From the NCBI GenBank assembly GCA_964057225.1, contig OZ059899.1:11966001-12030000 (forward strand): a stretch of 64,000 nt of DNA, written 5' to 3'. Source of the stretch: Auanema rhodensis (taxonomy: Eukaryota; Animalia; Nematoda). Numbering within the stretch: the first letter of the stretch is position 1; every line of letters begins with the position of its first letter. A program made the position numbers and the translations under genes. The notes below the pieces were generated by a model. The model was not told the DNA's origin. It worked only from the letters and a program-made list of their open reading frames with translations, and did no database searches. Below, piece by piece: positions 10,915 to 46,200 of this stretch.

Positions 10915-13053
<2,139 letters not shown>

Positions 13054-40920: not shown

Positions 40921-42849
40921 TTAAAAAATATCAAAGTTATCAACATGTTGGGGATGAACACGTTTTACATGCTTTTTTAGTTCACTAGCTAATGGATACT
41001 TCTTATCACAAAATTCGCATCCGTGATTCAGAACCTTCTCGTGTATCCGCCGTTTATGTATGCTGAGTGATGCTGGTGTGGAAAATCGTTTTTGACAATC
41101 AACACAAAGAAAAGGTAATTCTGGCTAAAAATAGATAAAACTATACTCAAACTTCAATTAATAAGCCAACTAACCGTATCAACCTTAGTATACATATGAA
41201 TATTTAACTGTTCTTTTCCATCGTGTTCTGGGTGTTTTCGCTTTATATGACGATTCCTGGATTGCATAGAAGCAAACACTTCAAGGCAATATGGGCACGA
41301 TTTATCTAAAAAAAGATAAGCAAATAATGTCATACGTGAATAACCAAGGGTATTTTTCCTTACCTTTCACTGGCCTACCAGAAACACTACTAATTAGGGA
41401 AGAGCAAACAGACACCGCAGGGCTAACTTGTGGACTACCAGCACATATTCTCTCTTTCGTTAGTTTTCTTTTTTCTAATATATGTTCCCTATTTAAACAA
41501 TAGTAACTATGTCTCTGAAAACAGTTGAATGAACAAAACATTTAAAAAAGGAAATATACTAACCTTATACTCTGATTCTAATCCGAAAGTTTTATGGCAT
41601 ATTTTACAATCAAATATTTTTTCTATAGCATTATCATCTAATCCAACAGAATGAACACTACTTTTGTGGATTGCTAAACTGCTTTCCTCTCTGAAAACAA
41701 ATTGACTGTAAAACAGAAAAAAACACCAGTAAACTGACTTAAACACAGATTTACACTTATTACACGAGAAATACCCATTTTTACTACGAATATGAGTTTG
41801 TTCATGCCTCCTCAAATGATGACCTCTCTTGAATCGCATATAACAGAATCGACATTTGAAAGCATATTCCTTAAAATAATTATAATTAAAACAATAATTA
41901 TGAAATAATATACCTTATTATTTTTTAAATGTTCATTTGATACATGTTGCCTACAAGACTCCTCGTCCAAGAATGCTTTACTACAGATAAAACAGCAAAA
42001 TACTTTTTTAGACTAAAAAACGATTAAAAAATAAAAATCTAATACACTGACAGTAACATACCCTATTAGCTTCTAATAATAAAGATCTCATTCTAGATAA
42101 TTCACGTTTCGACTTTTGTAATCTTTCCGTTTCCTCCTTAAGACTTAATTGTACTATTTCCCTTTCGTGTTCAGCTATAATTTCGTCTGCACGTTTTATT
42201 AGGGCTTGCTGTTGTAAAGCATATTCAGAGTCTTTATCGTTTAATTGTTCCTCAAGCTAAATAATTAGAATCATTAATAGAAAACTTGGCGCTATATTTA
42301 AACCTCATTGAGTATAACAGCATGCTCATCTTTCATTTGATAGTAATATTCATAGAATTCCTCATCATCTGAAGCGACATTTTCCTCAAGACTGGTACTA
42401 AGCTGGCTAAAACATGTTCATAAGTTAATTAAATTCCCAAAGGCTTAATAAACCTTTCATTTGATGAGAAAGATGAGTAGTCAAAGTCTAAACCGTCTAG
42501 TACAGCAGTGCTGGTCGAAGGTAGATTGTGTTCGAAGTAATTCTAAAAAAATATTATAAAAAAATGTATATTTTATAAATGCGTGGTTTATTCCCCTATT
42601 GTTTGGGTACTTAATATTACTCTAGTTTGAGGTACTATATTTTTAGGTTTAATTTTCCCAGGTTTGAGGCATTTTCTTTTAATACACATGTTTAAGTTTA
42701 TGAGTAATTACTGATTACGATATTAAAAAGAGAGAAAGGATAAAAGAAAAAAGCCTCTAATAAATTTAGAAATAAGAAACATAGTGCAGTACATGCACAT
42801 CAGAATTACTGGCAACGGCAATAGAAGATAACTCTTGATAAGTCTTCAT
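40921..42849 (-). CDS. Multi-C2H2 zinc-finger protein (about 7 fingers) with an acidic/helical N-terminus
   Basis: Fingers read CFICSKAF..SCRQHVSNEH, CRFCYMRFKRGHHLRRHEQTH, CNKCKSVF..SLAIHKSSVH, CKICHKTF, CPYCLEVF..RNRHIKRKH, CVDCQKRF..LSIHKRRIH and CEFCDKKY..LKKHVKRVH. The first exon (ATG 42849) is inferred from phase compatibility. Confidence 0.88.
42585..42698 (+). repeat. Tandem array of four degenerate SL1 spliced-leader-like sequences
   Basis: GGTTTAATTTTCCCAGGTTTGAG (42646-42668), ATTACTCTAGTTTGAG-GT (42616-42633), GGTTTATTCCCCTATTGTTTGG-GT (42585-42608) and TTTAATACACATGTTTAAG (42678-42696) each resemble SL1, GGTTTAATTACCCAAGTTTGAG. Confidence 0.7.
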
Positions 42850-43235
42850 AACAGCAAGAAATGAAACTAACGAGAAATATATTGACTCTCGAGAATCTGA
42901 AAAGTTAATATGAGTTTAAAATTGGAACTGTTCATATATAACAGCGGCATGTGAAAGATTAAAAAATCGGAATTGTAAAAAAGGAAATGAAAGAATGCAA
43001 CATATCTATGACAATATGACTGGAGTGTCACAACAGTCAATCCATTCAACCCACGCGACGCGACCGCGTTGCGGGATTCGTAGACGGTCCTGCAACGAAA
43101 TATTCAACTTTCTGGCATTTTTTCAAGTTTTAATAATTCCTGAAAAATTCATGTATAAATTACAGATTATGTTATAATTTTCGACAATATTATATAATTA
43201 AGTAAGATTCTTTCTAGGAAGGGTAAAAGAGGTGT

Positions 43236-46200
43236 ATGGCTGAGCAAAATTTTCACGGAGGACCGGTTATGCAATGTCGTATGGAGTGCTTGTATGTGAA
43301 TAGTAGTTTCAGTGAAATTTTTATATCCATGAATTCAGCTACATAGACGAGTCCTTCGATCGCACCTCATTTTTAAATTTTGGTGATGTTAAGCTAGAGC
43401 TATGTCTGGATGACCCATCATTGAGAGATCGTGATTCGGCAAGAATCCATACCAGTAATCTTTCGGATTTCAGAGGAGACGTATGTTTCGAATAACAGGG
43501 CATATCATAGAATTATTTAGACTCGTATTCCGCAAGGTCGATCATTGACTGTGTCTAAAAATCTGATTGCTTACCGATTCACTTTTGAAAACTCGACAGC
43601 TGTTCGCATCCTAAATAAGGAGTTGAAGAATCGTCGAGTTCTCAAGGTAAGTTAAAATATATAAATGCGGTATATTGTGTTTGATTCAAGCAATTTCTTG
43701 ATACTCCGGTTGATGTTCAATTCGCCACTCATTCTTGTCTGTTAGCCGTAGTTGATAACTCCAATAACTTATATGTATACAAAGTAAATGAAAGTGTTGT
43801 AGAACCGTAAGAAATTTCTGTTTATCGTAACATTAAACAAATATTTTTAAGTAAAAAGTATGTTCAAATCAGTGATTGGCCAGTTGATGAGAAATTGGGC
43901 GATAACACTATTTTACCTCGAATCTCTTGGTGTCCTTATGCACCTGAAAACCCTTCAGATCCAAGCGATGTATGTGATCTAATTGCTGTATTCAGAGTAA
44001 GATAATTGAGTAATTCCTGTTTAAACGATAGTTTTCTTGTAGGGAACTAAGGTACATGTGATCAATCTTAACATAATTGCTGCAAAATATGGCGATTCAG
44101 CTACTATTACATATGAAAAAGCCAAAGAGGTTGATGCCGTTCTTGTTATTGAAGATGAAGAAGTAATGAAATAATATTGTAAATTGTTTCTATATTCAAT
44201 ATTGTTTTACAGAATGTTTCTGTTGTATGCATTTCACCTGATTCTACAGCGGTAGCTGTTGGAACAGAGAAGGGGGTTGTTTCTTTCCATGTTATCAATG
44301 GTGACAAAGCAAAATTCGCGCACAGCTGGAGACCGGAAGTCAAGAACGGTATATCAGATCTGTTTTTCTTGGATGATATTTCCAGCCTGAACTCACCGAG
44401 CTCGTGAGTCATATACGTTAGTTAATCGCGAAATAATCAATACAGTTCTAGTGAACCGGAAAGATTCTGGAGGCACTGTGTAATTGTATCAAATGAAGGA
44501 CGTGATATAGCTCTTTTTGAATGTGAACGTTGGAAACGTAAAAGTGCGGTTTACTCAGTTAATTCTATTTGAAACTTCTTTGTCTGTTTAGGTTTTGTTT
44601 CGATTTCGTCAACATCACGTTTTAAAGCTTACATGGATCCTCGTGTTCGTTATGTGAATTTACTTGATGAGAGTGGAACAGTGAGTAAATTTACTGAATG
44701 TATTGCTCATTTGTGAATCTTTTTGAGGTTATGCTGTGTTTGGAAATACACCGTCCTGCACCAGTATTTGCTTCCGTCACTAAATTAGGATTCCATAGTC
44801 CTCTCATCTCAATTCATCCGTATGATGTTCAAGATTGTAATCTGAATTCGTCTTACGATGGTTTGTAACCGTACACTCATTAACCTTAAAAACAAAACGT
44901 AATTACAGGTGAATTAGAAGATGATTCTTCAGACGATCGTAACGATACAGTTATATCCTCATATATTTCATTAGGAACCAAGGCGTTAGCTCAGCTATCA
45001 GTAAATTTGGAGAAAGTGGAAGTATGGGTAAGTTATTGTTATAGTTCATCTAATATTATCAGTCGTTTAGGGTATTCGGGAATCGGATTCTGAAGAGTCA
45101 GCCAAGTAAGCCTGTTTTATTAGTCATTTTTTATTTTATGTTTCCTGTAGGGATGAGCCTCAACCTCCTCAAGATGCGTACAATGAGGCAAGGGAATCAG
45201 CTCGTTCTTGGCATAGTATGGACAAAGACGAAATTGATCAAAAATTCAGTGATTTAGGAAATAAAGTGAGTTTGATTATCTAATTGCATTAGTTGTATCT
45301 TCTTTTCTAGTTGGATCAACTTACTTATCAAGTACAGCGAATGGAAAATGATCAAAGACATGGTTCTGTTAATGATAACATCCTCCAATCTCTACAACAA
45401 TTTCGTAAGAATACTCGTCGTTGTTCCTTTTAAATGTTTTATTGATTCAGGAGAAGAATTTTCTTTACGGGAAGATCGTTTACTTGCTAATATATCCGAT
45501 TTGATGGAATCTAACAGAAGTGAGACTATTATGGTTATAAGAAATGTTCTTAATGAGAATTCTGTCGCTGTTCAAAATTCAATTCAAATGAACAATAACG
45601 TAAGGCATTTTGGAAGTCGTTTAGATGCCACACCTTTTTTTTTTCAGCAAGCGTCAGATTCTATAACTTCAAGAGTCACAGACTCACTTGCTAATATGAT
45701 TGTTCCTTCTCTTGATCGTATTTGTACTCAACTCTTCAAGCAGCTAAATGAATCATTCCGCCTTGGCATGGAACAGGTTTAAATTATCAAGTTTTTACCT
45801 ATTCTGACTATATGAATATACAGTATATGGTACAACTGCGAGCATTGCATAATGCAACTCTGGCAGCTGTTGCAAGTGCAACTCCAGCTCCTCCAGTGTC
45901 TGTTTCTGCTGATCGACAGGCTTTGATTCAAATGATTAAGGGTCGACAAGGATCTCAAGCTTTAGAAACTGTATGAAAGAAAATAATATGGATAGTTGAT
46001 AGGAATAATTGTAGGTACTAAATCAAGGCGATGTAAATGCTCTGGAATTTGTAATTAATCATTTGGACCCCGATGAGTTTTTCGCTTCAAATCACTTATC
46101 ACAAGCTGTTCTTATTTCTTTATGCCAACAGTTATCGTTACGTATTGAATCTGACACTGACCTGAAATTCAGGTAACTGAGTTTTATATTTAAATTTTAA

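Follow-up and report, generated by a model that had tools for sequence, protein, structure and literature searches.

An antisense array of degenerate SL1-like leaders in a poorly spliced intron of an Auanema rhodensis zinc-finger gene

In Ascaris, the DNA of the 22-nt spliced leader is an internal promoter element. The SL1 RNA genes of nematodes (Rfam SL1, RF00198) hold this 22-nt leader in tandem, co-oriented copies, at a spacing of roughly 280 to 1000 nt in gene arrays, and each leader continues into an RNA body of about 100 nt with an Sm site and stem-loops. Leader copies lacking such a body are known from dinoflagellate retrogenes, which carry relict spliced-leader arrays that come from cDNA recycling (Slamovits and Keeling 2008, reviewed in PMC6050394). 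In these retrogenes, according to the review, the relics are taken as traces of leaders that have re-entered the genome; they precede a gene of the same orientation, and the copy furthest 5' is the youngest. SL1 is also a target of mobile DNA. The NeSL-1 retrotransposons of Caenorhabditis target SL1 (Malik and Eickbush 2000, cited in PMC4640811 and PMC3636483), and NeSL insertions are described, in the passage of PMC3636483 that deals with them, with target deletions and not duplications.

Here we describe four SL1 look-alikes in a window of Auanema rhodensis DNA, the whole stretch of 64,000 nt that was analyzed (128 kb on both strands). They stand in the same orientation, head to tail, on the + strand at 42585-42696, antisense to the zinc-finger gene that hosts them. 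The array resembles SL1 RNA genes in its tandem and co-oriented copies, which come within 3 to 8 edits of the 22-nt leader, and GT follows two of them, A and B. However, its copies are spaced 24 to 37 nt apart, and it has no RNA body, Sm site, stem-loops, or Rfam match. What it shares with the dinoflagellate relics is a head-to-tail row of degenerate sequences that resemble the leader of the organism itself and lack an SL RNA body. It differs from those relics because it is antisense in an intron, no gene follows it, the third copy is the best one, and two copies are followed by a donor-like GTA. NeSL-1 is comparable in that the SL1 exon serves as a recognized DNA target and SL1-bearing DNA is rearranged by nematode mobile elements, but no element or remnant adjoins the copies in the window.

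The array and its host gene

The gene model was built from RNA contigs of two runs (X10 and X12, from one study). The coding range lies at 40925-42849 on the - strand and comprises 10 exons that encode 428 aa with seven C2H2 fingers, as given by the RNA joints and the translation. Exon 1 (42793-42898) has its ATG at 42849-42847 and ends in CAT before the donor GTACTG. It is followed by intron 1 (42543-42792, with GT at 42792-42791 and AG at 42544-42543) and, according to the RNA joints and translation, by exon 2 (42454-42542). Intron 1 is 250 nt long, and the other eight introns measure 47 to 58 nt. The array thus sits in an enlarged intron of a C2H2 zinc-finger gene, as the preliminary description had held. 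Explicit joints in the RNA contigs define intron 1 and seven of the other eight introns. The remaining one, intron 5, lies in a stretch that was skipped as a repeat; it is placed at 41870-41913 from the numbering of the contig, in which exon 5 takes up exactly 100 letters.

For two introns of the gene, the RNA joints differ slightly from a naive reading of the sequence. They put the donor of intron 9 (41125-41174) at 41174, as ACG/GTTAGT. The same intron holds a weak SL1 look-alike in the sense orientation (41146-41167, - strand, GGCTTATTAATTGAAGTTTGAG), which matches at 16/22 and is at the background level of the window. Intron 6 (41691-41738) reads AA/GTCAGT..TTTTCAG according to the joints, and the finger spacing C-X2-C-X3-F-X5-L is kept. 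Where DNA runs cover the stretch, they are identical to the window. We found no paralogue of the zinc-finger gene in the window, and no relatives of the 65-aa exon 4 among 1.84 billion representative proteins. Two metagenome scans with single exons returned nothing or a generic zinc-finger match only, and an exact look-up of a large open reading frame found nothing.

The 5' end of the mRNA is at 42898. Contigs of both RNA runs stop exactly there, and a 106-nt contig of X12 spans 42793-42898. Directly upstream, at 42899-42905 on the - strand, is a TTTTCAG that is likely to be the trans-splice acceptor of the mRNA, judging from its letters and position. The preliminary description had treated the zinc-finger mRNA as trans-spliced. 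The position of the 5' end right after TTTTCAG agrees with this, but no SL1 letters were seen on that end in the RNA contigs, and we therefore only infer trans-splicing of this gene. The divergent neighbor on the + strand, which starts at about 43218, is a different case. At about 43216, before its first exon, an RNA contig shows the loose letters CCAAGTTTG, which are those of the canonical SL1 3' end, and the mRNA of this neighbor therefore receives canonical SL1 by trans-splicing. A first intron of 47 nt lies at 43292-43338. We considered whether a copy of the array could be a cis-encoded leader of this + strand gene and rejected the idea, because the letters are the canonical CCAAGTTTG and no joint leads from the array. 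Elsewhere in the window, a 183-aa exon at 11306-11860 (- strand) belongs to the ATP synthase alpha/beta family (Pfam E=7e-56) and is an ordinary housekeeping neighbor.

The copies were compared with the 22-nt nematode SL1, GGTTTAATTACCCAAGTTTGAG, by semi-global alignment (+1 for a match, -1 for a mismatch, -1.5 for a gap). Copy A (42585-42608, + strand) reads GGTTTATTCCCCTATTGTTTGGGT followed by AC, which gives GGGTAC, and scores 10.5. Copy B (42605-42631, + strand; score 12) matches the SL1 3' end at 14 of its last 16 nt. These are ATTACTCTAGTTTGAG (42616-42631), directly before the GT of a GTAC; the 5' part of copy B has two small insertions, and its initial GG is common with the end of copy A. 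Copy C (42646-42668, + strand), GGTTTAATTTTCCCAGGTTTGAG, is the best of the four, with a score of 16.5 and three edits from SL1, namely, two substitutions and one inserted T. The weakest is copy D (42676-42696, + strand), CTTTTAATACACATGTTTAAG, with a score of 9.5. Copies A, B, and D are each 6 to 8 edits away from SL1. The letters right after the leader are GTAC in A and B, GC in C, and TT in D, and the spacing from 5' to 3' is 24, 37, and 28 nt. An A-rich tract and an AATAAA follow on the + strand, 30 to 70 nt downstream of the array. The letters and the scores confirm the four look-alikes as they had first been described.

These copies are not SL RNA genes, and on this point, too, the preliminary description was right. 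SL1, SL2, and the other Rfam families gave no match, either in the window at the gathering score or locally up to E=10. No Sm site (AAUUUUGG-like) and no stem-loops were found after the copies, and the fold signal did not differ from that of shuffled sequences (z-scores of +0.19 and -0.49 for the two strands). Moreover, a spacing of 24 to 37 nt is too tight for SL RNA genes. The Rfam search and the fold z-scores likewise rule out another small RNA.

Nor does the array look like a dispersed or a simple tandem repeat. The intron has no second copy in the window, so that membership in a dispersed repeat or transposon family was rejected, and the inverted repeats around it are short and at chance level. 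Tandem Repeats Finder reported only a weak 15-nt, two-copy row at 42618-42648. The array does not qualify as a minisatellite, with its irregular spacing and with copies that are nearer to SL1 than to their sisters. One DNA run shows a break inside the array. In run X9, whose organism label is coded differently, a contig agrees with the reference as far as 42614, a position within copy B; its next 29 letters are unlike the reference and absent from the window. A neighboring contig has its boundary at 42615. This break may be a heterozygous structural variant or a tip of the assembly graph, since the neighboring contig simply ends at 42615. The footprint of an SL1-specific retrotransposon was rejected; the ambiguous break at 42614/42615 is not used as evidence, and NeSL elements are described as deleting their target.

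Likeness to SL1 and descent of the copies

The two highest SL1 peaks of the whole window, both strands included, are in this cluster. Beyond the cluster, 12 peaks of at least 9 were counted in the window, where the null expects about 9 per 128 kb. For the null we trained an order-3 Markov model on the window and generated 296 Mb. It contained three matches of at least 16 and none of at least 16.5, the score of copy C. It also contained 50 pairs of peaks (scores of at least 9.5, within 120 nt) but no triple and no quadruple. The density of the copies is therefore far beyond this background, and four independent chance matches are excluded, because the null did not produce even a triple. The null has to be read with the caveat that real genomes are locally more repetitive than a Markov chain. 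Therefore, the fair rival is a single chance unit that was duplicated on the spot.

This rival supposes that slippage duplicated an AT-rich stretch with an accidental likeness to SL1, and that the likeness is meaningless. Several observations are in its favor. SL1 is itself AT-rich, matches 6 edits away are no more frequent in the window than the background (intron 9 of the gene contains one), and the row at 42618-42648 has a weak 15-nt period. When the four copies are aligned without SL1, their consensus is only about 17/22 like SL1. Against it stands, to begin with, the 296-Mb null, which holds no match as good as copy C.

The relations among the copies weigh further against a chance unit. 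All four are nearer to SL1 than to any sister: copy A scores 10.5 against SL1 and at best 9 against a sister, copy B 12 and 10.5, copy C 16.5 and 10.5, and copy D 9.5 and 7.5. None of the three differences between copy C and SL1 is common to A, B, or D, and the common ancestor was therefore nearer to SL1 than copy C is. We then simulated the descent of the copies under two ancestors, a C-like unit and true SL1, conditioned on their observed likeness to C. The probability that A, B, and D are as SL1-like as they are was 0.37 with a true SL1 ancestor and 2e-4 with a C-like chance unit, a likelihood ratio of about 1700 in favor of true SL1, with the caveat that the copy units were delimited by alignment to SL1. 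The SL1-free consensus of about 17/22 means that the argument for a true SL1 ancestor leans on the SL1-guided alignment. Weighing these points together, we regard a duplicated chance unit as unlikely, and the copies are probably derived from SL1.

The letters beyond the leader bear on the source of the unit. GGTAC after the leader is common to A and B, and GAGG with a T-rich tail is common to B and C. Therefore, the repeated unit extended past the leader into a donor-like GTA. A unit of this extent fits better with the SL RNA or its gene as the source than with a mature mRNA, to judge from the shared letters.

This observation also bears on a second rival, modeled on the dinoflagellate retrogenes. 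A trans-spliced RNA could have been copied back into the genome repeatedly, with a new SL1 added before the old one in each round. The mechanism is documented in dinoflagellates, in the account given in PMC6050394. The array would suit it insofar as the relics are in tandem, share one orientation, and are decaying, and the A-rich tract with AATAAA lies 30 to 70 nt downstream on the + strand. However, the array is not followed by a co-oriented gene, an open reading frame, or RNA on the + strand, and the next + strand gene, at about 43218, is past exon 1 of the zinc-finger gene. The best copy is the third of the four (scores of 10.5, 12, 16.5, and 9.5 from 5' to 3') and not the 5'-most. In addition, the GTA after A and B is what an unspliced SL RNA or its gene would have, not what an mRNA would have. 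We consider recycled cDNA very unlikely as the origin of the array.

Retention of intron 1 and possible pairing with SL1

Intron 1 is poorly spliced. The main contig of X10, 1688 nt long, lacks the short introns, yet it runs unbroken from 42454 to 42898, through intron 1. In X12, unspliced intron 1 is present in a 310-nt contig at a depth of 25.4, the spliced joint from 42542 to 42793 has a depth of 25, and the flanking exons have depths of 62 to 76. Thus, intron 1 is kept in about half of the X12 transcripts, and X10 shows the retained form only. It is the sole retained intron of the gene; the other eight are spliced cleanly in the contigs of both runs. Intergenic bins have zero RNA depth, and DNA contamination is therefore not the cause of the retention. 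In the retained form, the reading frame stops after 27 codons.

The donor of intron 1, CAU/GUACUG, lacks a G at both -1 and +5 and is the weakest of the gene; every other donor has a G at -1 and/or +5. The weak donor is a plain explanation of the retention that makes no use of SL1. The locus is in this respect like known cases of retention at a weak 5' splice site: the gene's longest intron has its poorest donor and is retained in about half of the transcripts, its neighbors are spliced, and an early stop results. There is no difference in kind from those cases, and the locus is unusual only in that the intron contains a 22-nt complement of the organism's own leader. Apart from this, exon 1 and the acceptor contain a 9-nt perfect inverted repeat, AGUAAUUCU (42802-42810, 9 nt before the donor) and AGAAUUACU (42536-42544, which includes the AG of the acceptor). 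This repeat could hide the acceptor in the pre-mRNA; its occurrence is about at chance level for a 350-nt stretch.

The preliminary description had proposed that the pre-mRNA contains anti-SL1 sites that could pair with its own leader and thereby couple removal of the intron to leader supply. In the form considered here, the copies, mainly C, would pair with the gene's own leader or with the SL1 snRNP and would slow the removal of intron 1 or divert its acceptor, so that the amount of full-length protein would follow the supply of SL1. The copies, chiefly C, would then be a feedback sensor on trans-splicing, of an undescribed type, that reports the SL1 supply of the cell. The literature searched contained no account of intronic anti-SL1 elements.

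SL1 RNA and antisense copy C are predicted to form a duplex of -24 kcal/mol, the best in the window. The next best SL1 pairing site in the 128 kb of both strands reaches -18.8 kcal/mol, 5 kcal/mol less than copy C. The retention itself, confined to this one intron, at about half in X12 and as the only form in X10, argues for such control, as do the early end of the reading frame after 27 codons and the mRNA 5' end that adjoins TTTTCAG. However, a fold of the SL1-capped 5' part of the pre-mRNA gave a probability of only about 6% for pairing of SL1 with copy C, and adding the leader to the folded 5' part left the accessibility of the donor unchanged. The substitutions against SL1 number about 11, and one of them, G20 to A in copy D, is wobble-compatible in the antisense RNA. 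They therefore give no sign of selection for pairing, and all copies except C are heavily degraded. SL1 letters are absent from the 5' end in the RNA contigs, which also show no trans-splicing onto exon 2, and the weak donor alone accounts for the retention.

For pairing with SL1 the predictions point both ways, to a strong duplex between the two RNAs and to a low probability in the fold of the capped RNA, and the substitutions show no bias that would keep it. The expected retention is present in the RNA and is restricted to intron 1, but nothing in the X10 and X12 contigs ties it to SL1. We judge control of splicing by anti-SL1 pairing to be distinctly unlikely, and we hold a sensor role of the copies in equal doubt.

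The copies might instead act as DNA. A factor that recognizes the SL1 leader, possibly this zinc-finger protein, would bind them and act on a shared divergent promoter region. The role of the leader as an internal promoter element in Ascaris gives this idea a precedent, and the arrangement of the locus is compatible with it: the array lies 200 to 300 nt inside the gene, and the 5' end of the gene is about 320 nt from the divergent SL1 trans-spliced neighbor. However, the copies are worn, the RNA contigs show no RNA start within the array, and the zinc-finger protein is without a recognizable relative (65-aa exon, 1.84 billion proteins). A role as binding sites in DNA is exceedingly unlikely.

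A probable decaying relic and its meaning

The reading that we prefer, with confidence slightly better than even, is that the array is a neutral, decaying mini-array derived from SL1. In this scenario, a piece made of the 22-nt SL1 leader and the first letters that follow it (GTA..) would have landed antisense in intron 1 of the zinc-finger gene. It would have multiplied three or four times in place, head to tail, with the irregular spacing of 24 to 37 nt, through slippage or error-prone break repair, and the copies would have drifted since. The array would help to account for the 250 nt of intron 1, whose neighbors have about 50 nt. The poor splicing of the intron would come mainly from its weak donor, CAU/GUACUG.

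We infer the origin of the piece, its way of multiplication, and its lack of function from the present state of the copies, and neither the source nor the mechanism of the insertion is directly seen. Decay without function is consistent with the 6 to 8 edits in three of the four copies, which have no bias that would preserve pairing. The canonical SL1 3' end on the mRNA of the neighboring gene likewise agrees with an SL1 source. A point against a relic is that the window's strongest anti-SL1 site falls in the one intron that is retained, which is a coincidence if the array is a relic.

If the copies are mere relics, they show that a bare leader can get into a nematode genome and multiply in it when the remainder of the SL RNA gene does not come along. 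The entry of bare leaders is known in dinoflagellates, and the literature searched held no report of it in a nematode. If, on the other hand, the copies are functional, they would give the first example of a gene sensing how much of its own trans-splicing leader is available, by way of an antisense site within an intron that is retained.
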